DNA of 64,000 bases from the sequence record MT612988.1; one strand, written 5' to 3'. Made by a program: the position numbers and the translations under genes. Shown one piece after another: positions 1,805 to 45,750 of the stretch; position 1 is the first letter of the stretch; each line of letters starts with the position of its first letter. Below the pieces are notes generated by a model. It did not search any database. It had not been told where the DNA came from and saw only the letters and a program-made list of their open reading frames with translations.

Positions 1805-3820
1805 TTAGCCGATGATTTCTGCAAAGTCAGCGTCAGTTGACGTTGCTACGAAGTTCAGCGTAATGTAGTTGATTGACTTAGCAGGTTTCACGTAGATACT
1901 TGCTACAAACTCGTTTCTGTCGATGACAGACCCTGGGTTGTTTGTCTCATCACATACAACACGGAAATCGTAAATACCGCCTAGATCTTGAATGTTAGTC
2001 AAGTAAGCGTCGATTTCTGATTTGAAGCTTGAGCGTGTGAACTCATCGTTCAATTCGAATAGACGATACTTAGCAGCATCTGAGATCGCTTTCTTCAGCA
2101 AGTTGAACAGACGACGCACGTTAATGCGGTCAAATGCACTTGCTTGCTGTGTAGCAGTCTTATCACCGTATAGTACGAAGCCTTGACCTGCAAAGCCCAC
2201 TACAGGGTTAATACCGATTTGATATAGCGCATCACGGTGAGCACGACGTAGATCAACTGCTAGACGGTTTACGCCCTTGATTTGACCACGATTGAAGCCC
2301 GCTGGTGACATCCAAGGTTGAGAAACTTGGTCAGTGTAAGCACATAGACCTGCAATATCACCCGCTAGAGGAACCCAACGATTGCGATCTGAGTACTTGT
2401 CGTACTGATACTTATAGTTACCGTCAACCACTGCATAAGTCGTGCTTACGTTTAGATTGTCAGTTACAGGTTGACCGTTAGTCGGGTCGATACCCGTGCG
2501 CCAGCCTTGAATATTCGCTACTGCAACATGCGCTTGTTTGTTGATTACGTGAACACCCGGTGGCGATACGAAAACAACACAGTCTTGACGTACATTACCA
2601 ACTGAGTCAATCGCGTATTTCTGAACAGTCGATGCAATTGATAGCTCTTCTGCCGCAGCATTACCCGCAATGATCAAGTTTGTGTAAAGCACTTCTGGGT
2701 CAGATAGCATATCTAGACCAAGCATCCAGTCGTCTGCGCCAGCGTTAGCGTCGTAACCACCACCAAGATTGTATGCACCTGAGCCAGTATTCCAACCCTC
2801 TGCTATCGCAGTGATGTACGCAGAACCGCTATTTTCAAAGTACTCGTCGATGAAAATAGATTGACCGTTCACGTCTTTGTCACCTGGGTTCGTAGAAACG
2901 ATGAACGCTTCTTCAACTTCACCAGATACGCGAACAATTACAGCGTATTGGTTGCTGTTTGCAGGGCCGAAAGTGAAGTAACTAGCTAGGTTGATTGAAC
3001 GAGTACCACCATCTGGGTAGATTGGTAGATCGATGTCACCTAGTGTATGACCAGCCGCGAATGCAAATGCAGTCTGATAGTCGGAGTAGTTAATCACTTC
3101 AACAGAAATGTTGTCACCATAGCTACCAACATAACGTGCAGCAATACGAGAGAAACCTTGCTTCTCGATTAGATCAGCGTATTTCAATGCACCGCCTTCA
3201 GTTTCAATCTCTGTTAACGCACCTGTTGACAATTCGATATTAGGGAAGTATACTGAACCAGTATCGATAATTTCAATCGCAGAAAGTGCAATATCACCTT
3301 GAGTTGGTTGTAGTGTAACTGTACCCACGCCCGGGTAGTTCCCGTCAGCTTTAGCAGCCGCAACGATCTCTGCCGAAGGCAAGAAAATCTTAGTTGCTGC
3401 GTTGTTGTTACCCGCATCTACTTCAAGTACTTTACCTTTTTCAGTAAGCGGACCAACACCTGAGTAAGTAATCGTGATTTCATCACCAACAACACAGCCG
3501 TTTGATGCACCTAGCGTGTATTCAACAGCGTTGTATAATGCAGTCGCGTTCTGAGCACTTGACTCATCACAGATACGCACTAGACGTAGATCGTTACCAT
3601 ACTTCAAGAAGTTGTTCGCAGTCATGAATGATGCTGCGGTATAGTCGTTTGGACGACCGAAAATAGTAACCAAGTCGGACTCTGAAGTTACTTGAGTGAT
3701 GCTGTATGCTGGACCCCACTCAAATTTCCCCACCATAGCAGCACGCCCTGTAGACGCACGACCGATAGCACTTGCAAGGTTAATCTCTTTATTTTCGACA
3801 CCCGGAGATAAAAGAGTCAT
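1805..3820 (-). CDS. gp18: tail sheath protein
   Basis: MTLLSPGVENKE, FEWGPA, WMSPAGFNRG, FDRINVRRLF. Confidence 0.98.
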   Translation of the reverse strand: MTLLSPGVENKEINLASAIGRASTGRAAMVGKFEWGPAYSITQVTSESDLVTIFGRPNDYTAASFMTANNFLKYGNDLRLVRICDESSAQNATALYNAVEYTLGASNGCVVGDEITITYSGVGPLTEKGKVLEVDAGNNNAATKIFLPSAEIVAAAKADGNYPGVGTVTLQPTQGDIALSAIEIIDTGSVYFPNIELSTGALTEIETEGGALKYADLIEKQGFSRIAARYVGSYGDNISVEVINYSDYQTAFAFAAGHTLGDIDLPIYPDGGTRSINLASYFTFGPANSNQYAVIVRVSGEVEEAFIVSTNPGDKDVNGQSIFIDEYFENSGSAYITAIAEGWNTGSGAYNLGGGYDANAGADDWMLGLDMLSDPEVLYTNLIIAGNAAAEELSIASTVQKYAIDSVGNVRQDCVVFVSPPGVHVINKQAHVAVANIQGWRTGIDPTNGQPVTDNLNVSTTYAVVDGNYKYQYDKYSDRNRWVPLAGDIAGLCAYTDQVSQPWMSPAGFNRGQIKGVNRLAVDLRRAHRDALYQIGINPVVGFAGQGFVLYGDKTATQQASAFDRINVRRLFNLLKKAISDAAKYRLFELNDEFTRSSFKSEIDAYLTNIQDLGGIYDFRVVCDETNNPGSVIDRNEFVASIYVKPAKSINYITLNFVATSTDADFAEIIG

Positions 3821-3857
3821 TTATTTTTCCTTACCATTAAGTTGTTTGTTCATTTAA

Positions 3858-3865
3858 TATTTATA
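3858..3865 (-). promoter_or_regulatory. T4-type late promoter TATAAATA upstream of gp18
   Basis: + strand tatttata, 38 nt upstream of the gp18 start. Confidence 0.8.
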
Positions 3866-3866
3866 A

Positions 3867-6177
<2,311 letters not shown>

Positions 6178-6287
6178 ACGTTCCTCTCTAAAACGCTCTG
6201 TGAGCGTTTTTCAATAATATGAGTACAAACACTCAATACAATAGACAAACGCTGCGTACGTTAAGCACACAGCGATATAAACAGGCA

Positions 6288-6836
6288 TTAAGCGTCAGTG
6301 TCTCCACGAACAGTAATAGTTGCAGTTTCTAATGCTGCCGCTGCACCTGCATTGATAGTACGCCTAACCCAAATTGCTCGATATTCACCTGCCGCTAAAT
6401 TACCGATATCAAGACCTGATTCGAATGTCGAATGTTCACCGAATACAACCGCTGACAATTCAGTACCTGAATCAACTTCGTCATTTAGAGTGATAAGCGA
6501 ATCAACGCCGTTAAGCGCCACTGGGTCTAGACCTAGCTCGATAGTAGAATCTGCCGATGCTGTATTGGCAGACATATACACCATTGCATCATACAAAGTT
6601 AGCGATGGGTGGTTATTTTTGACGTAAATTAAGCGATACTCAACACGACCTGAAGAAGCTTCAGATGAAGGTACCGCATCGAAAAGATCATGAACTTGAC
6701 CTGAAACTAGCTCGGTAGCACTGATACCACCACCCAGTGAATCAACTTCTTGATCGTTTGTGTTGCCGTTTCCCGGCGAAGCCGCAACTACGTGCAGACT
6801 TTTATTAAATCTTAAATCACCTGTTACGATAGGCAT
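6288..6836 (-). CDS. hypothetical beta-rich protein between gp15 and gp16, probably virion-associated
   Basis: 182-aa ORF with GGAG RBS inside the late operon; no family recognised. Confidence 0.7.
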   Translation of the reverse strand: MPIVTGDLRFNKSLHVVAASPGNGNTNDQEVDSLGGGISATELVSGQVHDLFDAVPSSEASSGRVEYRLIYVKNNHPSLTLYDAMVYMSANTASADSTIELGLDPVALNGVDSLITLNDEVDSGTELSAVVFGEHSTFESGLDIGNLAAGEYRAIWVRRTINAGAAAALETATITVRGDTDA

Positions 6837-6888
6837 GATTTCTCTCCAAAAAGATAAGGACGGTCTTCATATTTAGAAGACCACCATA

Positions 6889-7950
6889 TTAGTTTTCAAT
6901 GTTGTACGTCACGTCAGTAGAGCTAATGACAGCTTCACGAGAATGATCCCAAACTACACCGTACGAGCCGCCCACTTCATCTCTGTTATACCAGTAGATG
7001 TTATAATCGCTATCAATTGTAGATCGAGTAGACCAATCAAATTCACTTGATGCGCTCACTGAACTATATGTCGAATACTCAACATCAATATTACCGCTCG
7101 TGCTGAATCGTCTCGACCAATCAACATCAAGCTCGCTGCTTATATCACTACGTGTATTCCAAACAACATCGTATGATGATTCGATTCTATAACGCCAGCT
7201 AATTGAACTAGCAGCATCGACTTGGGAACGAACGCTCCAATCAATGTCACATGAACTAGAAACAGCTTCACGCTCTGCATGAATGATTGCTTGCTCTTCG
7301 TCTTGGAAGTTCAAGTAGATTGTTCTAATCTCACCGAACTGAGCATTTGTAGGCGGGTATAACCAGCCTTTTAGTCGCAAGTTCAACGTCCATTCGATAT
7401 GTCGCATATCGCCAGCCGCGCCTTCAAATGTGGTTTCAGGTACGGCAGATTCTAAAATGATAGGAATGTCACGTTCATCGACTACTACCTCATTTTCATC
7501 AAGCTCTTTAATCATCGTGTTAAATTGAGGTTGAAAATAGGGTAGTACTTGTTCTATAATCTGATATGCATCATCTTGATGTCGCGTGTAAACACTGACT
7601 TCAAATTCGAAGTCGTAAGGAACAGGGTTGAACAGTTTGTTCGACTTCGGTCGATCTCCTGTGTAATCGCGTGTCAACTTACGGTTTGCAATATTAGTTT
7701 TTCTAGTCGCGTCATATGTACACGACACCATGTCCAAGCCAATTCTTGGTAGTAGCGTAGCTACATTAGCTACACTATTGTCGCCGTTAAGCTCTTGACT
7801 GTTCAAAGACGCAACGAATTGCTCCTTTGATGAAACTGTAATTGGCACCTTTCTATACGCATCCCCGCGAGACACGTATATGTTAGAGAACAAGTTTCCC
7901 ATCAAGAGAACGTATTTGCGTATCGATCTGTGATAGAAATACCCTTTCAC
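6889..7950 (-). CDS. gp15: tail sheath stabiliser/terminator with C-terminal repeat extension
   Basis: YFYHRSIRKYVLLMGNLFS, PVPYDFEFE, QIIEQVLPYFQP; extra ~120 aa of Trp-periodic repeats. Confidence 0.9.
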   Translation of the reverse strand: MKGYFYHRSIRKYVLLMGNLFSNIYVSRGDAYRKVPITVSSKEQFVASLNSQELNGDNSVANVATLLPRIGLDMVSCTYDATRKTNIANRKLTRDYTGDRPKSNKLFNPVPYDFEFEVSVYTRHQDDAYQIIEQVLPYFQPQFNTMIKELDENEVVVDERDIPIILESAVPETTFEGAAGDMRHIEWTLNLRLKGWLYPPTNAQFGEIRTIYLNFQDEEQAIIHAEREAVSSSCDIDWSVRSQVDAASSISWRYRIESSYDVVWNTRSDISSELDVDWSRRFSTSGNIDVEYSTYSSVSASSEFDWSTRSTIDSDYNIYWYNRDEVGGSYGVVWDHSREAVISSTDVTYNIEN

Positions 7951-7959
7951 GATGCCCCC

Positions 7960-8799
7960 TTAAAAACTATCGAATGGATTACTGTTATTTACATTAAACC
8001 CGATTGGTGCTTCTTGACGTGGGTCTGTTGGTTTAACATCACTACCCTGAGGCACAACTTGCTCAGATTCGTAGTATTTTTCAACTTCATCTTCAATTTG
8101 AGTAATTTCATCACCTTGCTCGATGCCGATGTCCCAGCGACCATCAAGTGAATTGATCTTGTCAATATCAATCATTTCGTCAGTATCTTGACCAAAGTTT
8201 AAAATGTCGTCAATCGAGTCAACAACTGCGTCTGGCTTCTCAAGATTGATTTCCTCACCAGAGTATACGAATTTCGTCATTTTCATCTTACGCATAGGCA
8301 AAACACCATTCATATACCACGGGTCTTCTCTTTCAACCCAACTAATCTCAAATAGACTGTTAGCAAGAGGGAAATATATCAAGTCACCCATTAGCGGTTG
8401 ATTGCCATCTCCTTGTTGAGCGAACAGTTTTGGGTTGATACAGACATTCATTTCATCGTTAACTTGAAAGCCGAACTTACTATACCAATCGCCGTCGCCA
8501 TCCCAGCCGTCAAATGATTCAACATACAACGCCATTCTGAAGTTCTTTGTAAATTTACTCAACGGATCTTCGCCGAATACAAGGTCGACGTTTTGCATTT
8601 CACGTCGAATGTAAACACATTCAACGCCACGGTTGATGATAGACTCTGCAACAAGCATGTCTGTTAAATTCTGTTCGTTGGTATGATTTACCCAGTTGAA
8701 ATAAGGGTTGACTAAATGATCATTGTAGATCTTGTCAAACCCTTTTTGACTTTCCAACTTAGCGAACATACCACCTGTATTGTCGTCGTATGCTCCCAT
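7960..8799 (-). CDS. gp14: neck protein
   Basis: NPYFNW, LVAESIINRG, SKFGFQVNDE, GDLIYFPLANSLFEI. Confidence 0.95.
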   Translation of the reverse strand: MGAYDDNTGGMFAKLESQKGFDKIYNDHLVNPYFNWVNHTNEQNLTDMLVAESIINRGVECVYIRREMQNVDLVFGEDPLSKFTKNFRMALYVESFDGWDGDGDWYSKFGFQVNDEMNVCINPKLFAQQGDGNQPLMGDLIYFPLANSLFEISWVEREDPWYMNGVLPMRKMKMTKFVYSGEEINLEKPDAVVDSIDDILNFGQDTDEMIDIDKINSLDGRWDIGIEQGDEITQIEDEVEKYYESEQVVPQGSDVKPTDPRQEAPIGFNVNNSNPFDSF

Positions 8800-8802
8800 A
8801 AA

Positions 8803-9732
8803 TCACCCCATGAATACGCCAAGCGGAACGGTCAGTGACATAAGTTCTTCACGTAAGCGATTCATTTCTTCTTCTGCCTCTGCGTAAATCTCTTTACCGT
8901 CTACTGTAATACCACCTGGTAATTGAAGCCCTTGGTGCTTCTTCAGAATCGTACCGTTAAGCTGTTTAACCATAGCAGTAGCCATGTCTTTAACCCAACG
9001 CACCGAATATGCGTTCTGTTCAGCGAACTGGTTAGGGTTACCGATTGTGTTATTCTGTCTTAGAATCGCATACGGGTCATCCCAACGCTCTTGCGCTGTA
9101 GTGTCTTCATATGAACCAATTGTTGCTGCTTTGTTACCGATGATACCAGTCGCAGATTCAGAAACTAACAATGCACTAGGAACATATGCTTCGACTACAA
9201 CAACTTCATTCGGTTGCAAATTGGCATTGATGCGCAATTGTTTGTTAACACCATTATACCAGTAATCGTGTTCTGGTGACATTAAGTCCATCATCAAACT
9301 TTTGTATGACATCAAGTTCCAATAATCACTTAAACCGCCACCACTACCACCTAACATACCTTGATGATACGAATTGCATGAACCTTGTCCTGCACCGCCC
9401 GCGAGACCTTGTAAAAAGTCGCTGAACCATGAGTATGTCGCAGTCCCGTCCATTGTGAAGAAGCTACTCTCACCGCGCAAAATTTTTGTGATCGCAGTCG
9501 CAGGGATATCAAGATCTATGATACCTGTTTGAGCTTGTTCTTCAGACAATGAAATGATAGAATATGTTTTGTTCACCCCGTCTGGGTGATATTCAATGTA
9601 AAGTTCTAGCGCACGTGAAATGCAGTCGTATATCTGATCTTCAGATACTTCGACATTGACAATAGGCGCACCAAGGCGCCTTAAAATCAAATCTTTCATT
9701 TCACGAGGCGATGTAGCGTTATACGCTTGCAT
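8803..9732 (-). CDS. gp13: neck protein
   Basis: ILRRLGAPIVNVEV, WVKDMATA, LPGGITVDG. Confidence 0.95.
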   Translation of the reverse strand: MQAYNATSPREMKDLILRRLGAPIVNVEVSEDQIYDCISRALELYIEYHPDGVNKTYSIISLSEEQAQTGIIDLDIPATAITKILRGESSFFTMDGTATYSWFSDFLQGLAGGAGQGSCNSYHQGMLGGSGGGLSDYWNLMSYKSLMMDLMSPEHDYWYNGVNKQLRINANLQPNEVVVVEAYVPSALLVSESATGIIGNKAATIGSYEDTTAQERWDDPYAILRQNNTIGNPNQFAEQNAYSVRWVKDMATAMVKQLNGTILKKHQGLQLPGGITVDGKEIYAEAEEEMNRLREELMSLTVPLGVFMG

Positions 9733-9742
9733 AACTTACCCC

Positions 9743-11425
9743 TTATACTTTTAGTACAAATGATTCATGGTCGATAGTAACATTAGCCGCTGTACTAGCC
9801 AATACTCGAATCTCACTCAAGTCATCTAGATTCGCAACGTTAGTGATTGTAACTGGAGTAACTTGGTTTGCACGAAGCGTACGTGTTTTCTCGATTGATG
9901 AGCTTGTGCCGTTATCATGATCGAAATCAATTCGAATCGTGATTGTAGTGTTTACTGGTGAAACAACAACCCAATGAATAGACATCGTTTTGCTCAATGA
10001 TAGACCGTTACGTGTCAATACACCACCTGCATACGTGTAACCACTCACATCTGTCTCAAGATTAAATAAACTGAATACATCTGTAGGTGTAGTTGTCAAA
10101 TCAACTGTACTCGGAGTATCAGAAGACAATAATGCATGATCCAACTGTGCTTCAAGTTCCAGAACACGAGCACGCAATGTACCCACTTCGCTATCACTCT
10201 GACCAACTACAGCCAATAGACCGTCAACGTCTGCCTGAGCAGATTCAACTAAGCCACGGTTTTCTTGAATCGTGTACCATGCAGTGAATTCAACAGGGTT
10301 TGTACGCTCACCTAGACTAGACTCAAGCTGTGACACTCTGTAAGACACTGTGCCAGTTTCTGCGTCAGTAGCCCCTAAACGACCCCACAAGCTATTGATA
10401 TCGTCGTTAAACGTCGATAGACGAGCTTTCATGCTACCCGAGTACACGTCATCTACTGCGTATGAACCGATATCAGTTGACATTTCAATAAATAAATTAG
10501 TAACGGAGCCAATTTGTGACTGATTATCTGCAATTGTAACTTCATTCGCGCTAACGCGATCAAGTAGACCTGTAGTCGGCGTTTCAACTTCCTGTTGTAA
10601 TAATGCAATATCTGATGCGTTGTCTGAAATAGAACTTTCAGCATCATCAAGACGAAGATACACTGGACGACCAGAGTCAGCATCTGCCGTTTCACCTAGT
10701 TCATCACGAATCTGATCAACAGAACCAACTTGCGAGTTTTGTTCTAGTTCGTATAAACGACCGTTGATTGAAAGCGGGATTGCGTTCTCGCCGATTTCAG
10801 CGTTGATCGTAGCTGTTTTGTTGTACAGGTCTTCGATCTGATATTTCATACCAGTCGGGTTTGTACTAGGAGATGGGTTGCCGTTGACATCGTAGTTACG
10901 GTCATTACCAATACGACGCTTGATGAAATATAGATCTTTACGAACTGTATCGTTGTTTTCAACTTCGTTTGGAATATCTAGGCTGTTACGAACACCAATA
11001 TCTGCTTCAACATCTTCGATGCCTTTATGCAGACCTGTTGCAAGTACGTCAACGCTACTCGGTACACCGATGTCATCAATGACGTTAGTCATTTGACCTT
11101 CAAGTACATCAATATCAAACTCGTTTTGTGACACACGAGAACCTAAGTTAGCGTCACCGCCACCTGTCAGTTCGTTAACAGTATCAACAAGTTCTTCAAT
11201 TGCGCTTTGCTGTGCTTTTGTGTTGTAATGAGAGTTTAGAACGTTTTCTTGAATCTGTACTCCTGCGCGGTTTAATACACCGTCTGAAGTCGTGTCACCA
11301 GAAGCACCGTTGATGCTTTCACCGTTCTTAGCCCAATTGATTCGAGTCTGATCGGGACGTTGAGAAGGATCTGGTTGACCATTTACATATCTAAGCTCTT
11401 CAATGATAGGCTTTTGAATTGTCAT
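9743..11425 (-). CDS. wac: fibritin (whisker/collar fibre)
   Basis: LRYVNGQP..Q.RINWAKNGE...GVLNRAGVQIQEN N-terminus, then segmented coiled coil. Start taken at MTIQKP (11425), which follows an AGGG RBS. Confidence 0.88.
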   Translation of the reverse strand: MTIQKPIIEELRYVNGQPDPSQRPDQTRINWAKNGESINGASGDTTSDGVLNRAGVQIQENVLNSHYNTKAQQSAIEELVDTVNELTGGGDANLGSRVSQNEFDIDVLEGQMTNVIDDIGVPSSVDVLATGLHKGIEDVEADIGVRNSLDIPNEVENNDTVRKDLYFIKRRIGNDRNYDVNGNPSPSTNPTGMKYQIEDLYNKTATINAEIGENAIPLSINGRLYELEQNSQVGSVDQIRDELGETADADSGRPVYLRLDDAESSISDNASDIALLQQEVETPTTGLLDRVSANEVTIADNQSQIGSVTNLFIEMSTDIGSYAVDDVYSGSMKARLSTFNDDINSLWGRLGATDAETGTVSYRVSQLESSLGERTNPVEFTAWYTIQENRGLVESAQADVDGLLAVVGQSDSEVGTLRARVLELEAQLDHALLSSDTPSTVDLTTTPTDVFSLFNLETDVSGYTYAGGVLTRNGLSLSKTMSIHWVVVSPVNTTITIRIDFDHDNGTSSSIEKTRTLRANQVTPVTITNVANLDDLSEIRVLASTAANVTIDHESFVLKV

Positions 11426-11465
11426 TTTTTGTTCCCTTGTATTGTAAATGAACATAGCTTACTAC

Positions 11466-11473
11466 TATTTATA
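11466..11473 (-). promoter_or_regulatory. late promoter TATAAATA upstream of wac
   Basis: + strand tatttata. Confidence 0.75.
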
Positions 11474-11555
11474 GCAATACAAAGAAACAGAGAGGGAATG
11501 TCTTTATGTGTTAATAATAGCAAGCATATTCATGGTATTAAACACGTATTTAATA

Positions 11556-11644
11556 CTAATCATACTAATACTTCTAATATCACTAAAACCACTAATACTA
11601 CTAAGATGAGACGGAATTTTTCCGCCTCTTGCCATTTCTTCGCT
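11556..11644 (-). repeat. dispersed intergenic element copy 1 (hairpin plus six TTAG units at 9-nt period)
   Basis: Homologous to 37477-37572 in inverted orientation. Confidence 0.8.
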
Positions 11645-11654
11645 GCGCTAATAC

Positions 11655-11682
11655 AAAAAAGGGTGAGAAATCAATCTCACCC
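11655..11682 (-). terminator. intrinsic terminator after gp12
   Basis: GGGTGAGA/TCTCACCC stem with a T6 tract on the - strand. Confidence 0.8.
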
Positions 11683-11722
11683 GTTTATTAGCATTGACTT
11701 TCAAGCTATAATATGCTTGTCT

Positions 11723-13150
11723 TTATGCAGTTCTTTCCCACATGTAAACAGTATAGTATGGCTGTACGTTATTATGTGGTTGACCACCACCTTCTGGTGA
11801 TGAGTAATACAAGTAGTTGTCGTTATCAGTGCGACCTGAACCTGGGTTGCTTCTACCATATTCGTATGCAACTCCAAACCCTAGTCCGTTGCCACCGTAA
11901 GTCCAACGATCACCCCAACCCGCGTGTTTGTGAGTTGGCATTGTTTCTTCAGTTAAGATAACTTCGTATTCACCACCTGTTTGTCTTACGTTGAATGTTC
12001 TACCACCATGTGTACCTTCAGATACAAGCACGCGACCTTCTGCAATTCTAGACCATGTTCCGCCGAATAGCGTAGCTGGTGATGTAGATTCAAGTGACAT
12101 GTAAATAGCACCAACAGGGTACATATTCAACATAGCTGATGATTCAATCAGACCATTTGTCATTAACTGAGTACCACTTACAGATTGAACATCGTCGATT
12201 TTCAATGTACCAGTTACTGTCCCGCCTGAAACCCCAATCTTTTCATTATTCAACTTATAACCCATTGCCGCACTTAGTGCTTGAGTCGCATCGTTTGTTG
12301 TTAGATTGTTTGCAATTTTCGCAACACCGACACGTGAGCTAGTCGCAGTGAATAAATCTAATGTACCGACTGTGACTGCATGGTCATTAGATGTACGCGC
12401 ATTTGCAACTGTTGAGTTCGGTAGATAGAAACCTGCCTTTCTCGTAGTTGTCGCTGTGCGTTCATTGAATCGATACGGTGAAATTGCTAGATTGTTTTCT
12501 GATGCTGATGTGCTGTTTACTTCAGTTGCATTTGCTAATCGAATCAACCCTTTCGTCGTTTCTGTAGCATCTGATGCGGTAGTATTCGCCCACACGTCAA
12601 GCATTTCTTTAACTCTCTGAGGGGTCATCGCTACGCTATTAGATAATGTACCTGTTGTCGTTGCTTGTGCATATGTCGCTAGCCGTACAGCACCCGGCGA
12701 AGATTCAGTTGCATAGAAACGAGTATTCAACGCGTAGTTCAATGTTTTAAGCGTGAATGCATGTTTCTGTGCTTCTTCTACTGCGGCTGTCGGGTCAATG
12801 TTATCAATCGTGCTGTTTGTAATCAGCTTCACAAAACCGTATTGAAGTTCTGTTGCAGTCGCGTGATTTTCCATCCAATAATTTAATGCAGATGGTGTCA
12901 CCGCGCTTGTGTTATTAAGCTCATCTGCGACTGCTGCATTATCACTTAACAATGTAATACCCGCGACAGATGTTGATGCTATAGGGTAATCGGGTAATGG
13001 TTGAAGTGCATGAGCTTGTACAAGCTCAAGACACGTTTGGAGATCGTTATTACCCCCAGTAAGACCATCAAAGGAAGTACCTTCGACTTCAACTGTAACC
13101 GTACCCGCATCGTCAATCACGTGATTGAAAATTTGAGTTCCTTTGCTCAT
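11723..13150 (-). CDS. gp12: short tail fibre paralogue A
   Basis: gp12-type repeats (ASTSVAGI, ATETTKGLIRLA); C-terminal PTHKHAGWG...PHNNVQPYYTVYMWER. Confidence 0.85.
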   Translation of the reverse strand: MSKGTQIFNHVIDDAGTVTVEVEGTSFDGLTGGNNDLQTCLELVQAHALQPLPDYPIASTSVAGITLLSDNAAVADELNNTSAVTPSALNYWMENHATATELQYGFVKLITNSTIDNIDPTAAVEEAQKHAFTLKTLNYALNTRFYATESSPGAVRLATYAQATTTGTLSNSVAMTPQRVKEMLDVWANTTASDATETTKGLIRLANATEVNSTSASENNLAISPYRFNERTATTTRKAGFYLPNSTVANARTSNDHAVTVGTLDLFTATSSRVGVAKIANNLTTNDATQALSAAMGYKLNNEKIGVSGGTVTGTLKIDDVQSVSGTQLMTNGLIESSAMLNMYPVGAIYMSLESTSPATLFGGTWSRIAEGRVLVSEGTHGGRTFNVRQTGGEYEVILTEETMPTHKHAGWGDRWTYGGNGLGFGVAYEYGRSNPGSGRTDNDNYLYYSSPEGGGQPHNNVQPYYTVYMWERTA

Positions 13151-14685
13151 TTAACTCGTCTCCAAATGTAAACTGGGTAGTATGGCATCATATTCTCATG
13201 CGGCTCATTACCACCAACTGCTTCGTTGTAATACATGTAATTATCACGATCAGTAGATTTCGAACCGGGATTATTACGCGAACCTGTTATACCGAATCTC
13301 CAGTAACTGACAGTATTATATTCATCACACGTATATGTTACACCATACGGGCTTCGATGAGTTTCGTAGCGAATACACCCCTCGCGTGAGCCTGTATATG
13401 CTTCACCCCAACCTGCGTGTTGGTGTTGTGGTAAATTACTCTCGTATAACTGAACACGGTCGATGTCACTGAACGAACCCGCTGCGTAATATCTGCGAGT
13501 GAACCCATCATCACCGATACCCTGCCCCATCATAGTTCGACCTGCTCTCATCTTATACCATACGCCACCGAAAATCTCATTCGGGTCAACTGATGAAGTG
13601 CAGTGAAAAATACTACCCACAGGGCGCCCTTCGAGACCGATCTTCGCGTCTAATTGGTTGTTTGGGAACATTTCTCTCTGCTCTCGCACAGTTGTGTAAT
13701 ATGTTCCACCATAGCTGCTCTGCTTTTGACGAGAAATGATGTTTGTGTAAATGTTGTCGCACTTCAAAACACCAGTAATTGTACCACCGTCTGGTCCCAA
13801 TAGTGTATTCAAATCAACACCAAGTGCAGCACTTGTGGCTTTCGTTGAGTCGTTTACATACGAGCTTGGTAGTTCAAAGAACCCGTGCTTAGTCGGTGTC
13901 GCTATTAGATTGTCAATTGTACCGGGAGTTATAGCATATTCATCTGAATCGCTTGCATTACGGTCATAGTTGTTCTGTGTTAATTTGAATGCACCACGCT
14001 TAGATGTCGTCGCTTTAACGTAATTAAGACCTTTAACTGTAATTGCAATCGAACCGTCTGATTTATACCCGTCTCGTTCTGCTACAGTACGAAGCACGCC
14101 CGTGTATGTTTCTGTCGCTTGAGCCCAAGGGTTTGGTATCTCTGCTTTAATTAAGTTCCACGTTCTAAGTGGGGAAATGAATCGATCAGGGTTATATGCT
14201 AAAGTTTCGCTTAGATTTGCAAACTCAGCAAAACCTTGTGATTCGTTTGTTGTGTCATCTGCTAGTGCATTACGAGTCGTCATCATTTCATTTAGACGGC
14301 GATATGACAGCAAACGACTTGCATCTGATGACGAATATGTTCTTGTCAAATCAGTATTACGCAATTCTTGTAGATTACCTAACTGAGTACTGGTTGCTGG
14401 TGACACGAACTGATCAACCCCGTCTAGTGACGCTGGTGTGATTACAGTTAATAAGTCGTCAAGTGCATTAGCTTCTGTTTGAGTTGCGTACTCAACAATA
14501 CCAGCCTCAGTCGTTGTCGCATACGGAAGTGACGGAAGTGGTGCTAATGCGCTATCGTCAAATAGCTCCATTATACTCTGCACATCACCGCCTGACTCAA
14601 ACGCTGAACCAGGCGATGTGAAGGGCTGTAGGTAAACATATTGCGCTGCATCACTAGCGTGCGTGAATATGTTTGTTCCTGACAT
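13147..14685 (-). CDS. gp12: short tail fibre paralogue B
   Basis: Same architecture as paralogue A (ATTTEAGIVEYAT; PQHQHAGWG...PHENMMPYYPVYIWRR). Confidence 0.75.
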   Translation of the reverse strand: MSGTNIFTHASDAAQYVYLQPFTSPGSAFESGGDVQSIMELFDDSALAPLPSLPYATTTEAGIVEYATQTEANALDDLLTVITPASLDGVDQFVSPATSTQLGNLQELRNTDLTRTYSSSDASRLLSYRRLNEMMTTRNALADDTTNESQGFAEFANLSETLAYNPDRFISPLRTWNLIKAEIPNPWAQATETYTGVLRTVAERDGYKSDGSIAITVKGLNYVKATTSKRGAFKLTQNNYDRNASDSDEYAITPGTIDNLIATPTKHGFFELPSSYVNDSTKATSAALGVDLNTLLGPDGGTITGVLKCDNIYTNIISRQKQSSYGGTYYTTVREQREMFPNNQLDAKIGLEGRPVGSIFHCTSSVDPNEIFGGVWYKMRAGRTMMGQGIGDDGFTRRYYAAGSFSDIDRVQLYESNLPQHQHAGWGEAYTGSREGCIRYETHRSPYGVTYTCDEYNTVSYWRFGITGSRNNPGSKSTDRDNYMYYNEAVGGNEPHENMMPYYPVYIWRRVK

Positions 14686-15371
14686 TATGCAATCCTTCTG
14701 TAATAATACACAGGGTCTGTGAATGTAGTTGAATCAGTGTGATATAATTCCCACTCGCCGTAACCAAGACTCGTCTGACCGTCTGATGTACCCGTGACAA
14801 CGCTTTTCGCTTGAATCCCAGTTGGTGCCCCTAAAGGGTCTAGAATGTCTGCAAACGTCGCTGTGTACGCTGTATTGTGCGGTCTTGAGCTTCGGTGCTT
14901 CAAAAGAAACGTATTTGATGGTGGTACATGATCTGTCGGAACCATGTCAAACAGATCTGATTCTAGTAACGCAGTGAACACTTTCTCTGCAATATCGTTA
15001 TCAGAATCGCCTACTTCTAGTTGAACAGGAACACCGTATAGCGTTATGTATTCAACTCCCGATGTACCGTTGTACGTAATCGTTTCATTAAATTGATTTG
15101 TGTTGAATGGGTTCGAAGCGTCAGTTGAAGCAATGATTGTCCCTACTGGCATAATTGCTGCCATAGCAAGCTGCATAATCGCAGCTTGCACGTTTGGGTC
15201 CCACGCACCGTCTTGAATCTCATCGACTGTCGAATCGCCCAATACCGCACCGCGGAAATTGAAGCGATCACCCGGGAATAATCCCGAGTCGCTAATCGCA
15301 TCTTGATCGAAAACTTTCATGCGTGAGTCATTACTCCACACTTGTGACGCATGTCTTGCTTTAGTCGTCAT
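14685..15371 (-). CDS. gp11: baseplate wedge subunit / tail pin
   Basis: Position between gp10 and gp12; IMPVGTII; GYGEWELY; TAATG coupling to the gp10 stop. Confidence 0.75.
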   Translation of the reverse strand: MTTKARHASQVWSNDSRMKVFDQDAISDSGLFPGDRFNFRGAVLGDSTVDEIQDGAWDPNVQAAIMQLAMAAIMPVGTIIASTDASNPFNTNQFNETITYNGTSGVEYITLYGVPVQLEVGDSDNDIAEKVFTALLESDLFDMVPTDHVPPSNTFLLKHRSSRPHNTAYTATFADILDPLGAPTGIQAKSVVTGTSDGQTSLGYGEWELYHTDSTTFTDPVYYYRRIA

Positions 15372-17617
15372 TATGCAGTCCTTATCCAAGTGTATGCAGT
15401 GATATATGGCTGAGTTACGTCAACCGCCTGAGCCACCTGACCATGATTGACCTTGATTGGCTCTTCTTTGTAGTAAGCTAGTGGCGTAGTGTTTTCAGGG
15501 TCGCCTAAACAACCATTCAAGTTAATGTCACCGCCTGAAGTAGCTGAACGTGCAACTAAGCTGTATTGTTCTGTGATGTTGTTAATATCACGCGAAGAAT
15601 CATTCGCGTAATCTGGGTTTGTTGTACTGATTAGCTCAGGGATATTCTCTTGAGTAAGAGTCACACCAATTGAACCACCCGTACCACCTGCTTGAACGAT
15701 ATTTTCATTGTTATTGTTTCGGTGGAACTTACCGTCGTCATTTGGGTTCCAACCCACGACTGTACGCCCCTCTGCATATCGAACCCATGTACCAAAGCCC
15801 ATATAATCGGCTGGGTTATTCGGGTTGTTTGCATTTGTGTATACCGAACCAATAGGGAAGATACTTTCAAACAGTGATGTCAGCGTACCGCCCGGTGCAA
15901 ACGTCTCAGGGTCTGGCAGAACTTCAGTTACTGCCGATGATGGGTTTTGCGGGTCGGTGTACATGATCTTGTTTGAGCGTCGTACGTCTGCCCAGTCGTC
16001 ACGTGAAACGAAAATCTCACGGGTTCTTTGTTGCAAGTTATCGTCGCCGTCATCCCACGTAAGCAATGTACCTATCACGTTGTCATACCAACGAACTGTT
16101 ACAATGTCGCTATCGATTAACGGGTCAGCGAAAACAATCGTATTCCAACGACCTTCCGAGTCTTGAATATAATCGTAATCATACTCACCGCCTGCTAGAC
16201 TATCACCATTACCTGCTGTATTCGACTTGGTTAACTGAGAACCATTGACTAATACTTCTAGTGTTTCGGTGTTAAACTGCGTATAATCAGGAAGACCGAA
16301 ATCACTCAACGTGATTTGCATGTCAGGTACGAAATCTTTACGTACGATTTGTCCCGGTGATTCGTCTACCGCGTAGTTGTTTTGGTCGATTACTTTAATT
16401 GATTTTAAAACGTAGCTACTACGGAAGCTCGACACGTCACTCAAGTATGTAATAAACGCAATTGGGTCAGCGTCATTTGCAGCCAAACGCAAACGAATCG
16501 TTCTACCGTCAAGCGGAGCTAGATCATCGTTTGTCAACTGTCTCCAACGAGAATCAGCCGTTAGATCTGTATATCCCGATGCTGATGTATGTGAAATCAA
16601 ACATTCAAATGTCTGAGAGTAACCATTGTGGTCTTGAGTTACGATATCACCAACTGCATATGCAGTACTACCCGCGTGGTCTACATACTCTGGGAAATCT
16701 GCGAATTCAGCCCATTTAGACTCTTCCCATGCGCCGATGCTGTTGTGTTCTTCTAGACATTGCCAGATGCGGTCATCACGACCTGTAACAGCGTCACCTC
16801 GTACTAAATCACCAACGTGATATGTTTCTGGGTTGTTTGATACCCATGCTTCAACAGTGTGAAGCGGGATTGAACCATAGTCGCTAAAGTCGCTAAGTTC
16901 GTCACCGAAGTATAACAAGTTACCACGACGATACACTTCTACCGCAGCTTGGTTGTATAACCCACCATTTAATTCAAGTGATACGTTGAAGTCACGCTGA
17001 TCTTGTCGTGCGATGATTGCTCGACGTAGAACACTAGGGATGTCACCGAATGTCAAACCGTTTACGTATTTCTGTGCAACATATTCCCAATGACGTGGTG
17101 GGGTGAATACAAGCTCAAGATCTTGATATGCATTCCCGAATTCCGCGCCAGAACCTAAGTCGTTTTGAGTTGAACCTGCGACACGTTTTATCGAGTCTTT
17201 AGGGTCTGGGTATACTGTTACAAGCTGCTTAGACCATGTGCCTTTAACGTCACGTAAACGAATCGCTTTACCGTAGTCTGCCTCTTCAACACCACTCGGT
17301 AGATATACATCAACTGGACCCAGTGACGTATCGATAGTCCATGATTCACCAAAACTTACGCGCAATTCAGGTCCCTGACCATCGCCGTTCTCGTCGAAAT
17401 ACAGTTCAGCGTTAGCAGGGTTGTACGATGTATCACCGTTTAGATATGTAGATGCAAATTTCCAATTGCGCCAAGCACCGGCAGCATATAATCTGCTACC
17501 GTCGCCTAATTGACTGTATATTTCGTCGAAGTTGTCACGGGTCTTAATGCCACCTACTCTTAGGTAATCACCAGTACCGTCATCAACAATTTGTCCGACG
17601 TTGATCGTCTGTTTCAT
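15371..17617 (-). CDS. gp10: baseplate wedge subunit with two inserted CBM5/12-like modules
   Basis: MKQTINVGQIVDDGTGDYLR, IFPIGSVY, NPADYMGFGTW, QPYITAYTWIRTA. Confidence 0.95.
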   Translation of the reverse strand: MKQTINVGQIVDDGTGDYLRVGGIKTRDNFDEIYSQLGDGSRLYAAGAWRNWKFASTYLNGDTSYNPANAELYFDENGDGQGPELRVSFGESWTIDTSLGPVDVYLPSGVEEADYGKAIRLRDVKGTWSKQLVTVYPDPKDSIKRVAGSTQNDLGSGAEFGNAYQDLELVFTPPRHWEYVAQKYVNGLTFGDIPSVLRRAIIARQDQRDFNVSLELNGGLYNQAAVEVYRRGNLLYFGDELSDFSDYGSIPLHTVEAWVSNNPETYHVGDLVRGDAVTGRDDRIWQCLEEHNSIGAWEESKWAEFADFPEYVDHAGSTAYAVGDIVTQDHNGYSQTFECLISHTSASGYTDLTADSRWRQLTNDDLAPLDGRTIRLRLAANDADPIAFITYLSDVSSFRSSYVLKSIKVIDQNNYAVDESPGQIVRKDFVPDMQITLSDFGLPDYTQFNTETLEVLVNGSQLTKSNTAGNGDSLAGGEYDYDYIQDSEGRWNTIVFADPLIDSDIVTVRWYDNVIGTLLTWDDGDDNLQQRTREIFVSRDDWADVRRSNKIMYTDPQNPSSAVTEVLPDPETFAPGGTLTSLFESIFPIGSVYTNANNPNNPADYMGFGTWVRYAEGRTVVGWNPNDDGKFHRNNNNENIVQAGGTGGSIGVTLTQENIPELISTTNPDYANDSSRDINNITEQYSLVARSATSGGDINLNGCLGDPENTTPLAYYKEEPIKVNHGQVAQAVDVTQPYITAYTWIRTA

Positions 17618-17626
17618 TATTGTCCC

Positions 17627-18595
17627 TTACGATAGTCTGATTGTTTCGATAGATTTGATAGCAATTGAAACATTGTCGTCGTTTGATGTAATATCAAGAA
17701 CGATGTTGCCAGCGTCAACTCGCGGTTCAATCAGAATCAAGTTACCAAAATCTTTGTCTGTATTGATTACTGAGTATTCATCAATATAAACGTCTGTTAT
17801 GTTATTTAGCAGCAACAATTCCGATGACATGCGTCGAGTAACAGCACCACCCTGTAGAGGGTCGCTATTCTCTGCATAAACCATCAATTTACATGCTGCA
17901 TACGATTGAATATCGAATAGCGGCATTGTAACTGTCACCGTGTCTGGAATTGAGTAAATCGTGTCATTAACTGGCGCACCGAAGTCACCTGCAATCGGGT
18001 TGATTTTGACACCCCACTGCGGCGTTCCTGCTAATCCCGTACCATCGTCAATGACAGTGCAGATGATATGACATCGATTTGTACGAACAATTTGAGTTCC
18101 GTTAAGTTCTGGGGCACCTACAATAGCGTCTCCTGATGATGGTGCTAGTACAATCGGGTTTGTATCTAATGTTGCTGTTGTGTTCTGAAACTCTATTCGC
18201 TCACCGCGTTTTGCCATCCCTGCTGTCGTGCCAATCTTCGGTAAATTCAACGTCATCGATGCACCGCCGCCTAATGATGACGTGTCGATGTCATATTTAC
18301 CACCTGTTACGATTGATGTCAGTAAGTTTGTATTGTTCGGACCACCCGAACCGCCCGCAGTAGAACTCGGTGGAATTCTCTGCCAATAACCACCTGCATG
18401 AGGTCTAGGTGCGATGTCATTATATGCAGGGATATAGTTTTCACCTGCATCGGTTAGCTCAAAGTCTGCATTAATATGGTAAAACTCATCTGAGTTATCA
18501 CGCAGCTTATTACCACCATTGTGAATTGTATCACCAGTACCGACCGAACCCGCCGTACCAGTTTCTAATCTATTACGTCCCATTTCTTTCTCCAA
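17627..18595 (-). CDS. gp9: baseplate tail-fibre connector
   Basis: GSVGTGDTIHNGGNKL N-terminus; position between gp8 and gp10. Confidence 0.85.
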   Translation of the reverse strand: MEKEMGRNRLETGTAGSVGTGDTIHNGGNKLRDNSDEFYHINADFELTDAGENYIPAYNDIAPRPHAGGYWQRIPPSSTAGGSGGPNNTNLLTSIVTGGKYDIDTSSLGGGASMTLNLPKIGTTAGMAKRGERIEFQNTTATLDTNPIVLAPSSGDAIVGAPELNGTQIVRTNRCHIICTVIDDGTGLAGTPQWGVKINPIAGDFGAPVNDTIYSIPDTVTVTMPLFDIQSYAACKLMVYAENSDPLQGGAVTRRMSSELLLLNNITDVYIDEYSVINTDKDFGNLILIEPRVDAGNIVLDITSNDDNVSIAIKSIETIRLS

Positions 18596-34921: not shown

Positions 34922-36894
34922 TGGCGGCTGATGAAAAAAAGATGAATGAGATAATCGGAAGATTAGATCATTTGATTCTCCAACAAGAAGACCGACCTGA
35001 AGTTTACACGATGCAGCGTGTGGCTCGTCATATCAACAACATTGATATAACAACGTCAACGATGCTCGAAACAATGCAATCGGTCTTCAAAACTAACGAA
35101 AAGGCAGTTGCACAACAGAAAAATCTATTTCAGCGCGTCATTGAAAACTTCGAACAGACATCAAACAGAGTCCGCGCTTCGATTATATCACTAACTGATA
35201 TCATCAAAACTACTTTAGATTTCAAAGGTCACTTGTCTAGAATTGATCGCGGTATTCAAGAGATGCGATTGACTGCAAAAATGCAGTTTGCTCGTATGCA
35301 GGAGGGGTTTACTCGATGGTTTGAACGACTGATCTTCAGAGTCAATGACATGAAGCGAATAATCGGGCTTCAGAAGACGACTGCCGACGATTTAAATAGT
35401 TTCTTGACGAACGGTGCGGGTAACAACTCTCCGCTTACTGTGGGCTTTATAAGCGCGTTATACAAGAAGATATTTGCATATCAAGTCGTTACTGATACCC
35501 GTGCTCGTAAAACTGAGCAATTTCGTTACAAAGAAAACATGAAAGTGCAACGCAATCAAGCGAGTGATCTACGTCGAATCGCGAATCACCTAACAGGCGA
35601 AAAGCTAGGATGGATTGCCAAGTTGTTTAGACTAGTTGGTGTAGGTCTAGTAATGCTAGGCGGTCAATTAGTAACGTTTTCAACATCTATGGCAGCGGCT
35701 GCATCAACGGCTAGTAAATTTGGTAAACTAGGTCGAATCGCTTCAAGCATTCTCTTAGGGTTTGGTAAGTTTAGCCAAGGGACGGGTAAAATCGTTCAAG
35801 AACTTGCAACTGACATGAGAGGCACGGTCAAAAAATGGATGTGGGCAGTTGTTCGTCAAACATTCTTAGGACTAGGTCGTATGATTTCAATCATGTTAAA
35901 CCCAATCGCATTAGCTGGTATGCTTGCGGGTTATGGCATTTACAAGTTATTTGAAGAAGAAATCGACCGAATCTTCGTTGCATTGAAGAGTATTTTCAGC
36001 GACCCCGAAAAACGGGAAATGTTGTTTAATATAGTGTCGAACTGGTTTAGCGATATGGTTCGAGGTATCGGAGAATGGTTCGGTATTGTCAGTGACAATA
36101 TTCAAGAAGCAGTACCCGAAGGTGCAGTTGATGGAATTGTATCTGGCTTCAATGCAGTGACATCTTTCGTTAAGAAAGCTTTCCGAATGTACGTTAATGC
36201 AATTAACAAAATCATAGCTGGTTGGTTATCAATTCCTGATTCGTTTAGATTGCTTATGTTAGCAATAGATGACTTGATGTTAAACGTTAAATCATTCGTA
36301 GTTGATGCATTAGATGCATTACCAGACTGGATGCGTTCAGAAGGCATGGACAAGTTCATAGCCGATGCTGACATTGAAGGTAAAAGAGCGAAACTAGATG
36401 CTGACAAAGCTGAAGTTCGTGAAAGACTCAATGCGCGTTATCAAACAGACTATCTAGGCAAAGCTGGGGATATGATCGTTGATGGGGCTAAGAATACAGC
36501 ACAAGCGGTTATAGACGGTGCTAAGAACGCTGCTGATGCTATCAAAGACCCTGCTAAGAATTTAGCAACGTCTGCCGAATCTCTTGACAAGTTCTTGCAA
36601 GCTGAAGTCGAGAAGAAGCAAATAGCAGAAGACGCAATTGTAGCGGCTGAACGTCAACGTATGATTAATGAGGGGATCATTAAGCCAATGCAAGAAGTTA
36701 AGCGTTCAATCATCTTAGAAGCTGTCGCAGCGCGAGAAGCAGCATTCCGAGCAGCACAGCAAACGAAAGAGGTTGGAACTAACTTCGTGAACAATGCGGT
36801 CAATTCAGTTCAGAATACAACGAACTTCAATAGACCGTTAAGCGTAAACAGTGAAGCGAAAGTGCCTTCACCAAATAGAAGAACGGTGAATTAA
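34921..36894 (+). CDS. tape-measure-like protein (gp29 position)
   Basis: 657 aa, helical, central hydrophobic segments, located after gp26/gp51. Confidence 0.7.
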   Translation: MAADEKKMNEIIGRLDHLILQQEDRPEVYTMQRVARHINNIDITTSTMLETMQSVFKTNEKAVAQQKNLFQRVIENFEQTSNRVRASIISLTDIIKTTLDFKGHLSRIDRGIQEMRLTAKMQFARMQEGFTRWFERLIFRVNDMKRIIGLQKTTADDLNSFLTNGAGNNSPLTVGFISALYKKIFAYQVVTDTRARKTEQFRYKENMKVQRNQASDLRRIANHLTGEKLGWIAKLFRLVGVGLVMLGGQLVTFSTSMAAAASTASKFGKLGRIASSILLGFGKFSQGTGKIVQELATDMRGTVKKWMWAVVRQTFLGLGRMISIMLNPIALAGMLAGYGIYKLFEEEIDRIFVALKSIFSDPEKREMLFNIVSNWFSDMVRGIGEWFGIVSDNIQEAVPEGAVDGIVSGFNAVTSFVKKAFRMYVNAINKIIAGWLSIPDSFRLLMLAIDDLMLNVKSFVVDALDALPDWMRSEGMDKFIADADIEGKRAKLDADKAEVRERLNARYQTDYLGKAGDMIVDGAKNTAQAVIDGAKNAADAIKDPAKNLATSAESLDKFLQAEVEKKQIAEDAIVAAERQRMINEGIIKPMQEVKRSIILEAVAAREAAFRAAQQTKEVGTNFVNNAVNSVQNTTNFNRPLSVNSEAKVPSPNRRTVN

Positions 36895-37430
36895 TGAAAA
36901 ACTTAACGATGAAGAATAATTTCCGAATCGACATCCCTGATAATAACGCAACTCAAACGTTCCAGTGGCAGATACAAACTGCCACTATCCCGGGTGTTAC
37001 GATGGAAATTGCAAGCATTACTCGTGGTCCGAAGTATGCCAAACTAGCAAATAACCATGTTGCAGGTTCTGGTACATCATATGACGATCTTTCGATTCAA
37101 TTTCTAGTCGATGAAGAAATGCGGACGTATGCCGAGCTGTATAGATGGTTGATCACAATGAATAACCCAACAGGTGCTAGTACAAGTGACGGGATTGTTC
37201 CAGTTACTATGCTTCTACATGTTCTAGACAACAACAAAGATAAAATTGTAGCAACATATCGTTTTGTCAATGCATTTCCAAAGTCACTCAGTGCTGTAGA
37301 ATGGAACTATACTGAATCTGGTGATGTTGAAGTCGTAACTTGTGATGTCGAGTTTGAATATTCATATTTTGAAATGATTCATAAAGTCGATGGCAAAGAA
37401 GAAGTAATAACACCCTATATGGGTTCATAG
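36894..37430 (+). CDS. gp3: tail tube terminator / completion protein
   Basis: QTATIPGV, YDDLSIQFLVDEEMRTY.ELYRW, AFPKSLS. Confidence 0.9.
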   Translation: MKNLTMKNNFRIDIPDNNATQTFQWQIQTATIPGVTMEIASITRGPKYAKLANNHVAGSGTSYDDLSIQFLVDEEMRTYAELYRWLITMNNPTGASTSDGIVPVTMLLHVLDNNKDKIVATYRFVNAFPKSLSAVEWNYTESGDVEVVTCDVEFEYSYFEMIHKVDGKEEVITPYMGS

Positions 37431-37440
37431 AAAGCAATTA

Positions 37441-37462
37441 AGCCCCTTACGGGGCTTTTTTT
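37441..37462 (+). terminator. intrinsic terminator after gp3
   Basis: AGCCCC-ttac-GGGGCT followed by a T tract. Confidence 0.85.
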
Positions 37463-37476
37463 GTATCTGAATCTAG

Positions 37477-37572
37477 AGCGAAGCGGCAGAATTTGGTGTG
37501 AGGCCCAAAAATTGGGCATCATCTTAGTAGTATTAGTAGTTTTAGTGAAGTTAGAGGTATTAGTAATATTAG
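37477..37572 (+). repeat. dispersed intergenic element copy 2 (hairpin plus six TTAG units at 9-nt period)
   Basis: Homologous to 11556-11644. Confidence 0.8.
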
Positions 37573-37660
37573 AGAATAGGCACCTTGTCGCATTGTTTAG
37601 AAATCACCAGATCTGTCGTATAATCGTGAGACGAAACACACTATTAATAGGTAACTCATT

Positions 37661-38305
37661 ATGATTATAGGAATCAATGGACAAAAGCGTTCAGGGAAAG
37701 ATACCCTTGCTGCTGCCATTAAAAAATCTCATAGTGATAGCACTTACATTTACAAATTTGCCGACCCGATTAAAGAAGGGTTGTTCATTGGGTTAAAAGA
37801 ATATGGCTATGATTATGCAGACATAGACGGTCAAACAGATTGTGACCGCGAAGTTCCAGTATTTACGTTAGACGAAGCAATTGAACTTGTATTGAAGTGC
37901 TGTGACTACGCAAACGTAGATGCTGATTATGATTACGTATACTTTACTCTACTTCCACACACTGGTCTTTTTAGTATTCGAGATCTCTTACAAATGACAG
38001 GTACTGATGTTGCACGTTCTCTTAACGATCAGCATTGGATCAATTATGCACGTGATAAATACAATCAGTTAGTGTTTAACAACCCCGACTTGCTCTTTAT
38101 AATTACTGATGTTCGTTTTGAAAACGAAATGAATTTAGTATATGAGCTTGGTGGCACGATGTTACAAGTTAACCGAGAAGGTTCTCTGGCATCTAATCAC
38201 ATTAGCGATACCGAATTGGGTTTTATTGAAGACGCTATTCAAATAGACAATAACGGTTCTCTTGAAGAACTGTATGAACAAATTGATAATTTAAATTTAA
38301 GGTGA
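37661..38305 (+). CDS. gp1: deoxynucleoside monophosphate kinase
   Basis: GINGQKRSGKDT P-loop, FADPIK, LQMTGTD, ITDVRFENE. Confidence 0.95.
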   Translation: MIIGINGQKRSGKDTLAAAIKKSHSDSTYIYKFADPIKEGLFIGLKEYGYDYADIDGQTDCDREVPVFTLDEAIELVLKCCDYANVDADYDYVYFTLLPHTGLFSIRDLLQMTGTDVARSLNDQHWINYARDKYNQLVFNNPDLLFIITDVRFENEMNLVYELGGTMLQVNREGSLASNHISDTELGFIEDAIQIDNNGSLEELYEQIDNLNLR

Positions 38306-45735: not shown

Positions 45736-45750
45736 AAATTGGTGATTGTA

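Follow-up and report, generated by a model that had tools for sequence, protein, structure and literature searches.

The stretch of DNA analyzed here (the window; 64,000 nucleotides of record MT612988.1) is 100% identical to Vibrio phage vB_ValM_R10Z and 85 to 88% identical to KVP40 over the two loci of interest, and it therefore comes from a KVP40-like (Schizotequatrovirus) T4-type Vibrio myovirus. Two look-alike intergenic elements lie in it, one between the short-tail-fibre gene gp12 and the fibritin gene wac and the other between gp3 and gene 1 (Table 1). A sequence-only reading had described these as a duplicated element with TTAG repeats at a 9-nt period and a covarying hairpin, in inverted copies 26 kb apart, each just downstream of an intrinsic terminator. 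We confirmed this observation. TTAG recurs six times at an exact 9-nt period in each copy, and a four-unit periodic pattern gave 6 hits in the window, all in these two places, against 0.00 expected in 100 shuffles. Over the 53 nt from CATC to the last TTAG we counted 6 differences (about 89% identity, compared to the 85% first estimated). The hairpin just 5' of each array, first drawn with an AAAAATT loop and different stems (CGG/CCG versus GCCC/GGGC), is better described as a 9-bp stem with an AAA loop in which two adjacent pairs are flipped (GG/CC versus CC/GG) while the loop is unchanged. A further short motif, first read as AGCGAAG, takes the form GCGCAGC in copy 1 and GCGAAGC in copy 2, 12 to 15 nt 5' of the hairpin. 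The copies are 25.9 kb apart and inverted, and each follows an intrinsic terminator. Three features lay beyond what the window alone could show: there are six copies per genome, a conserved promoter follows each of these two copies, and the element also occurs in bacterial islands.

Table 1. Features of the two element-bearing loci in the window
Feature	Positions	Strand	Detail
wac (fibritin)	9743-11455	-	Gene downstream of copy 1
Late promoter motif	11466-11473	-	T4-type, TATAAATA, in front of wac; surrounding block invariant in four phages
Promoter-like site	11514-11541	-	Early-type, sigma-70, directly after the array; GTTTAA partially conserved in the relatives
Copy 1, whole element	11556-11648	-	
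TTAG array, copy 1	11556-11604	-	Six units, 9-nt period, no C on the sense strand
Hairpin, copy 1	11608-11628	-	9-bp stem, AAA loop; one G.T wobble on the gene-sense strand
Mini-hairpin motif, copy 1	11642-11648	-	GCGCAGC
Intrinsic terminator of gp12	11661-11682	-	8-bp stem, 5 G-C pairs, T-rich tail; followed by a T run
gp12 (short tail fibre)	11723-13150	-	Gene upstream of copy 1
gp3 (tail completion protein)	36894-37430	+	Gene upstream of copy 2
Intrinsic terminator of gp3	37440-37457	+	Followed by a T run
Copy 2, whole element	37478-37572	+	
Mini-hairpin motif, copy 2	37478-37484	+	GCGAAGC
Hairpin, copy 2	37500-37520	+	Two stem pairs flipped (CC/GG), loop unchanged
TTAG array, copy 2	37524-37572	+	Six units, 9-nt period, no C
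Early-type promoter of gene 1	37596-37624	+	TTTAGA, 17 nt, TATAAT; both hexamers invariant in five diverged phages while spacer and flanks vary
Gene 1 (dNMP kinase)	37661-38305	+	Gene downstream of copy 2

To test whether the element is conserved in relatives, a criterion set out beforehand, we searched related genomes for further copies. The near-identical genome of phage VH7D holds six copies. A BLAST search found the element in all 51 KVP40-like records, mostly in six places each, and in no other phage. It was absent from the plasmid collection searched, and a scan of IMG/VR returned only KVP40 and VH7D. A pattern scan of one genome per prokaryote species gave 31 hits, all of them chance matches or unrelated perfect tandem repeats and none from Vibrio; these included perfect tandem arrays of a 9-bp unit, TTAGTTATC, which occur several times per genome in gut Bacteroidales MAGs, lack a hairpin, and bear no relation to the phage element. 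The sites are syntenic in KVP40, nt-1, 6E35.1a, 1.081.O, K566, F86, and VH7D: gp3 to gene 1, gp12 to wac, gp35 to uvsY, in front of nrdH-24-55, in front of a methyltransferase cluster, and in front of a lipoprotein-like ORF. These are six different gene neighborhoods with no shared adjacent gene, and every copy points the same way as its flanking genes. Phage 1.081.O is an outlier, with two tandem copies of the whole element about 165 bp apart between gp3 and gene 1 and roughly eight copies in all. In the sister clade, represented by Aeromonas phage phiAS5, gp3 and gene 1 are only 7 nt apart, so there is no analogous cassette at that site.

We next aligned 39 copies to define the anatomy of the element. 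Read along the strand of the flanking genes, it consists of an optional GCG-N1-2-AGC mini-hairpin motif, a 9-bp hairpin with an AAA loop, an ATC linker, and five to seven units of consensus TTAGTRRTA at an exact 9-nt period, about 100 bases in total. Positions 6 and 7 of the unit are purines in 90 to 99% of units, and TCATC before the first unit is almost invariant. C makes up 1.9% of spacer positions against 19% expected (P about 1e-62), while G is at its normal 23%, indicating that the array is strand asymmetric and not simply A+T-rich. Within the window, only one other stretch of 49 nt or more lacks C on the plus strand (45712-45763). The hairpin pairs in 87.5% of cells, with G.U or U.G wobbles on the sense strand only; however, covariation rests on a single compensatory event, the two adjacent flipped pairs in three sequences, so that support is real but thin. 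The GCG-N1-2-AGC motif (GCGAAGC, GCGCAGC, GCGTCAGC, GCGTTAGC) is present in 24 of 35 phage copies, 13 ± 2 nt before the hairpin, against 1.8% expected by chance. In all the variants the outer GC/GC and the inner G...A are kept, which matches the very stable d(GCGAAGC)-type DNA mini-hairpins. At the lipoprotein and methyltransferase sites (loci L004 and L006 in our numbering, and the corresponding KVP40, nt-1, and 6E35 loci), the GCGAAGCG motif forms the last codons (…KSEA…) of the upstream gene, and the element therefore supplies that gene's C-terminus and stop codon.

The sequence-only reading had stated that no annotated feature explains the element, and this holds. Short hypothetical ORFs are annotated across it in nt-1, 6E35.1a, and K566, but only 4 to 5 of 36 copies have an upstream ATG in either open frame, and copy 2 has an in-frame TGA before the array; starts and stops are not conserved, and we therefore regard these ORFs as spurious. 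An Rfam 15 scan of copy 1 returned a best hit of 17.6 bits against a 45-bit threshold, with E ≥ 0.5 for all hits. The array is predicted to fold back on itself as RNA because UUAG pairs with UUAG through wobble, but counting across the 39 copies showed no covariation and mostly unpaired spacer pairs, and we treat this fold as a by-product of the repeats. A role as an RNA element, in which the hairpin and the unstructured C-free UUAG repeats would act as a protein-binding platform, a processing site, or a translation enhancer, is nevertheless compatible with the strict co-orientation with transcription, the tolerated G.U pairs, and the lipoprotein site, where the element is the whole intercistronic region and its last unit carries AGGAG directly before the start codon. 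In the bacterial islands described below, a promoter-like site also lies about 10 nt upstream of the element. On the other hand, at least three of the six copies (gene 1, wac, and nrdH, with uvsY read by eye) lie just behind an intrinsic terminator, five of the six lie before the next promoter, and the hairpin decays in island copies while the array stays intact. No public RNA run was found to hold the locus. We therefore consider an RNA role improbable. Similar reasoning applies to the antitermination signal that had been proposed: a lambda-type nut site comprises boxA/boxB RNA downstream of a promoter and upstream of the terminators it overrides, with an essential hairpin, whereas most copies here lie after a terminator and before the next promoter, and the hairpin is degraded in several island copies. 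This reading fits poorly.

At five of the six sites a sigma-70 early-type promoter follows the array within 0 to 30 nt. Its hexamers (GTTTAG/A, about 17 nt, TATAAT; or TTGACA ... TACTAT) are invariant across diverged phages while the spacer and flanks vary, so these promoters are real and are true phylogenetic footprints, although at the wac site conservation of GTTTAA was partial. The wac gene is preceded by both an early-type promoter-like site and a strongly conserved late promoter, and in 6E35.1a a second TATAAATA abuts the last TTAG unit at this site. The lipoprotein-site copy has no promoter after it. Given this context, it is possible, though less likely than the reading we favor, that the element is a promoter-upstream regulatory array, coated by a phage DNA-binding protein that switches the adjacent promoter on or off during the early-to-middle transition, and that the islands copy it to sense infection. 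KVP40 and nt-1 have AsiA but no recognizable MotA (PMC2988021; PMC1524935), and an unknown middle-mode regulator is therefore expected. The downstream genes include uvsY and gene 1, which have middle promoters in T4. In the VH7D genome (90326-91525; 10326-11525 of locus L120), a conserved 66- to 73-aa ORF is followed by a 243- to 271-aa ORF and then by asiA (PF09010, E = 4e-46); the middle ORF is a positional candidate for the missing MotA analogue. The sequence pattern of the small ORF looks ribbon-helix-helix-like, and proteins of that fold bind tandem short repeats off the helical period; the ORF is 43% identical to a 60-aa ORF that precedes the big gene in some islands. However, this assignment is only our reading of the sequence pattern, since the AF2 model had a pLDDT of 66 and searches of the 68-aa phage ORF against Pfam, PDB sequences, and Foldseek gave no match. 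In addition, the distance from the last TTAG to the -10 hexamer is 25, 32, 36, 48, or 50 nt, with no fixed phase, and only six of the many early promoters carry the array (22 loose, uncurated matches to an early-promoter pattern in one genome). A duplex-binding site predicts neither the exclusion of C from one strand nor wobble on that same strand, and the even spacing around the genome remains unexplained in this view.

Copies are 80 to 85% identical between any two genomes, even though nt-1 and KVP40 are reported to be only about 66% identical overall (PMC4122927). In the two most divergent genomes, K566 and 1.081.O, the copies cluster by genome: the four K566 copies aligned share TTCG in units 3 and 4, and the 1.081.O copies share their own unit variants, indicating gene conversion among copies or co-evolution with a common partner. 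The nt-1 lipoprotein-site copy, at about 51.3 kb, lies at the edge of the 51- to 56-kb segment reported as heavily rearranged, and a different gene follows it. These data could also fit a recombination cassette, in which the element is part of a PeSL-type mobile terminator-promoter cassette kept uniform by gene conversion and is carried by islands only as homology that lets the recombination-dependent replication of the phage copy them into concatemers. The terminator-plus-early-promoter context matches PeSLs as described for nt-1/KVP40 (PMC4122927), plasmids that bear a T4 origin or merely homology to T4 replicate as concatemers in infected cells (PMC3016281), and only 85 to 95 nt are shared between island and phage. 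This reading could explain what the islands gain, but not the internal 9-nt periodicity, the TTAGTRRTA consensus, and the exclusion of C, which are under selection in their own right. Moreover, copy number is six in most genomes, the sites are syntenic, the element shows little sign of spreading outside 1.081.O, and it is conserved across otherwise diverged genomes. We consider a pure recombination cassette about as improbable as an RNA role.

To ask whether the arrays have distinctive physical properties, we calculated duplex stability across a whole genome. The arrays, which are 74 to 76% A+T, fall in the 0.04 to 0.43% least stable 50-bp windows (z = 2.8 to 3.6), although 81 loci in the genome are at least as easily melted as the weakest array. 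Four of the seven C-free or G-free runs of 45 nt or more in the VH7D genome are arrays. The six sites are 26 to 55 kb apart; for six random points on the circle, the probability of a minimum gap of 26 kb or more is 0.007, but this statistic rests on one syntenic arrangement rather than on independent genomes. In a packaging reading, the small terminase or another DNA-condensing protein would recognize the repeats, and the islands would copy them so as to be packaged. Repeated short motifs and even spacing would suit packaging entry sites, and satellites of other phages typically copy the helper's pac or cos site. However, T4-type headful packaging has no known sequence requirement, and there are six sites rather than one, none beside the terminase genes. 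The packaging role suggested by the sequence-only reading is thus neither excluded nor supported, and we rank it, together with a role in genome organization, as the least likely of the readings considered.

A search for bacterial carriers through clamp homologues found only other T4-like phages and one unrelated contig. In contrast, a metagenome pattern scan returned two contigs in which a complete array lies among Thoeris and restriction-modification genes. The uncharacterized 382-aa protein encoded next to the array has close homologues annotated in V. alginolyticus, V. parahaemolyticus, V. cholerae, V. vulnificus, V. fluvialis, V. cyclitrophicus, V. splendidus, and Photobacterium. The loci (numbered here L110, positions 3400 to 15000; L111; L112; L113/L114, positions 2600 to 18200; L131; L132; L101; and L102) belong to a family of chromosomal islands of about 15 kb bounded by a 529-aa large serine recombinase, which in two cases split a Peptidase_M32 gene. 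They have a small resolvase, a conserved small-gene operon, 22-bp-spaced iterons (ACAACTACG) before a 332- to 382-aa gene, and variable cargo (Thoeris, restriction-modification, TIR, clamp, clamp-loader-like AAA). Nine of the ten loci examined hold one copy of the element; a divergent subtype does not within the 7 kb examined. The element sits in the roughly 1.3-kb noncoding region, co-oriented with the big gene, between two promoter-like repeats, and about 500 bp upstream of the iterons. In the two metagenomic copies scored, the array is 96 to 98% identical to phage copies, and the other copies, read by eye, look as close. The V. cyclitrophicus island carries a unit (TTAGTGATA) that, among the aligned copies, was seen only at the gene 1 site of 6E35.1a, a phage of a related host group. 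The hairpin is partly degraded in several islands. The element is the only DNA similarity between a whole island and any phage record. Nevertheless, the islands show other links to T4-type phages: TATAAATA recurs at conserved places in front of their operons, some encode a clamp 44% identical to phage gp45, and one encodes a gp44-like AAA protein. A 349-aa island protein gave an AF2 model with a pLDDT of 72.6, no PDB fold match, and no profile similarity to the phage ORF next to asiA. A 52-aa island ORF matching sigma-70 region 4 (PF04545, E = 9e-6; L114, positions 8690 to 8845) lies directly after a TATAAATA motif; since AsiA targets region 4 of sigma-70, it could, speculatively, be an AsiA decoy. 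The islands look like satellites or defense islands tuned to T4-type phages, and neither PICMI satellites nor a published jumbo-phage island proved related. We found no description of the element or of these islands in the literature searched, although a mention of the repeat in the KVP40 genome paper cannot be excluded.

Together, these analyses establish a strand-oriented, noncoding module, mostly six copies per genome, that among phages was found only in KVP40-like Vibrio myoviruses and that is shared with chromosomal islands; a module so maintained and copied must be a cis-acting signal read by machinery present in the infected cell. What that machinery does is our inference. We tentatively favor, at a probability of roughly 0.4, a site where the duplex opens easily and a phage-specified protein assembly is loaded on the C-free strand, most probably a replication-initiation site that works together with transcription from the adjacent promoter. 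The origin or protein-loading interpretation first offered for the two copies, one of several, is thus partly supported. The evidence is indirect: six dispersed syntenic copies, an easily melted array whose strand asymmetry and sense-strand wobbles point to action at the single-strand level, flanking single-strand hairpin motifs, adjacency to promoters as at T4 origins (including one copy at uvsY), and copying into the origin region of Vibrio islands. In this view, the element would be the KVP40-clade counterpart of the five or more promoter-linked origins of T4, and islands wired to T4-type late transcription would copy the array so that the infecting phage's machinery recognizes or replicates them. 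Several points argue against it. There is no direct evidence of initiation. The array lies upstream rather than downstream of the phage promoters and behind a terminator, so that opening would have to come from read-through transcripts or from negative supercoiling behind the divergently moving polymerase, both of which are inference. T4 origins share no motif with each other, one site lacks a promoter, no initiator protein was identified, and the islands, having their own iterons and an adjacent uncharacterized gene, may not need a borrowed origin. If the module is a sequence-defined initiation or loading site, it would be the first shared origin motif known in a T4-type phage. The fuller scenario, in which a previously undescribed island family also parasitizes or senses these virulent phages by copying the module together with T4-type late promoters and, in some islands, a phage-type sliding clamp, is not excluded but is doubtful on present evidence. 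How T4-type phages choose where to start replication is only partly understood even in T4, and how KVP40-type phages run their middle program without MotA is an open question in the literature; a short, sequence-defined element that can be cloned, mutated, and used as bait gives a direct handle on one of these questions. The islands, with their defense cargo, point to an undescribed class of elements that sense or exploit virulent T4-like phages in Vibrio species important in aquaculture and phage therapy.

Comparison with known systems places these features in context. The T4 origins oriF (at uvsY) and oriG are units of about 100 bp in which a promoter is joined to an A+T-rich unwinding element and primed by an R-loop (PMC3016281). 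The phage element resembles them in size, in its A+T-rich, easily melted segment, in its tight linkage to a sigma-70-type promoter, in having one copy at uvsY, and in occurring several times per genome. However, in T4 the unwinding element lies downstream of a MotA-dependent middle promoter that transcribes into it, and the origins share no sequence motif, whereas here a defined repeat module lies upstream of an early-type promoter, behind a terminator or a coding sequence, in a phage without MotA; only in the islands does a promoter-like site precede the element. T4 oriE likewise combines evenly spaced short direct repeats, also of unproven function, with an early-mode promoter inside a late-gene region (PMC3016281), but it is a single locus with 12-nt units, no flanking hairpins, and no sequence similarity to the six dispersed 9-nt arrays described here. 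The evenly spaced repeats are also those of an iteron-type origin, yet the 9-bp period is not a multiple of the helical turn and no cognate initiator gene lies beside the six sites, in contrast to the islands' own 22-bp-spaced iterons, which do sit in front of a conserved gene. PeSL (promoter-early stem-loop) cassettes of T4-type phages, including nt-1/KVP40, are intergenic composites of a terminator stem-loop, an early promoter, and a Shine-Dalgarno site implicated in recombination between related phages (PMC4122927), a context seen at the gene 1, wac, uvsY, and nrdH sites. PeSLs are numerous and concentrated in hyperplastic regions, and their description does not mention a hairpin-plus-TTAG module, whereas here an extra module of roughly 100 nt lies between terminator and promoter, and the module has six fixed sites, several of them in the conserved core. 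Finally, phage satellites carry helper-derived cis sites such as cos or pac sites and helper-activated promoters. As in those systems, a chromosomal island here carries a short, near-identical copy of a phage noncoding site alongside helper-type late promoter motifs, but the helper would be a virulent T4-type phage, and the copied site is neither a known packaging site nor a known promoter.
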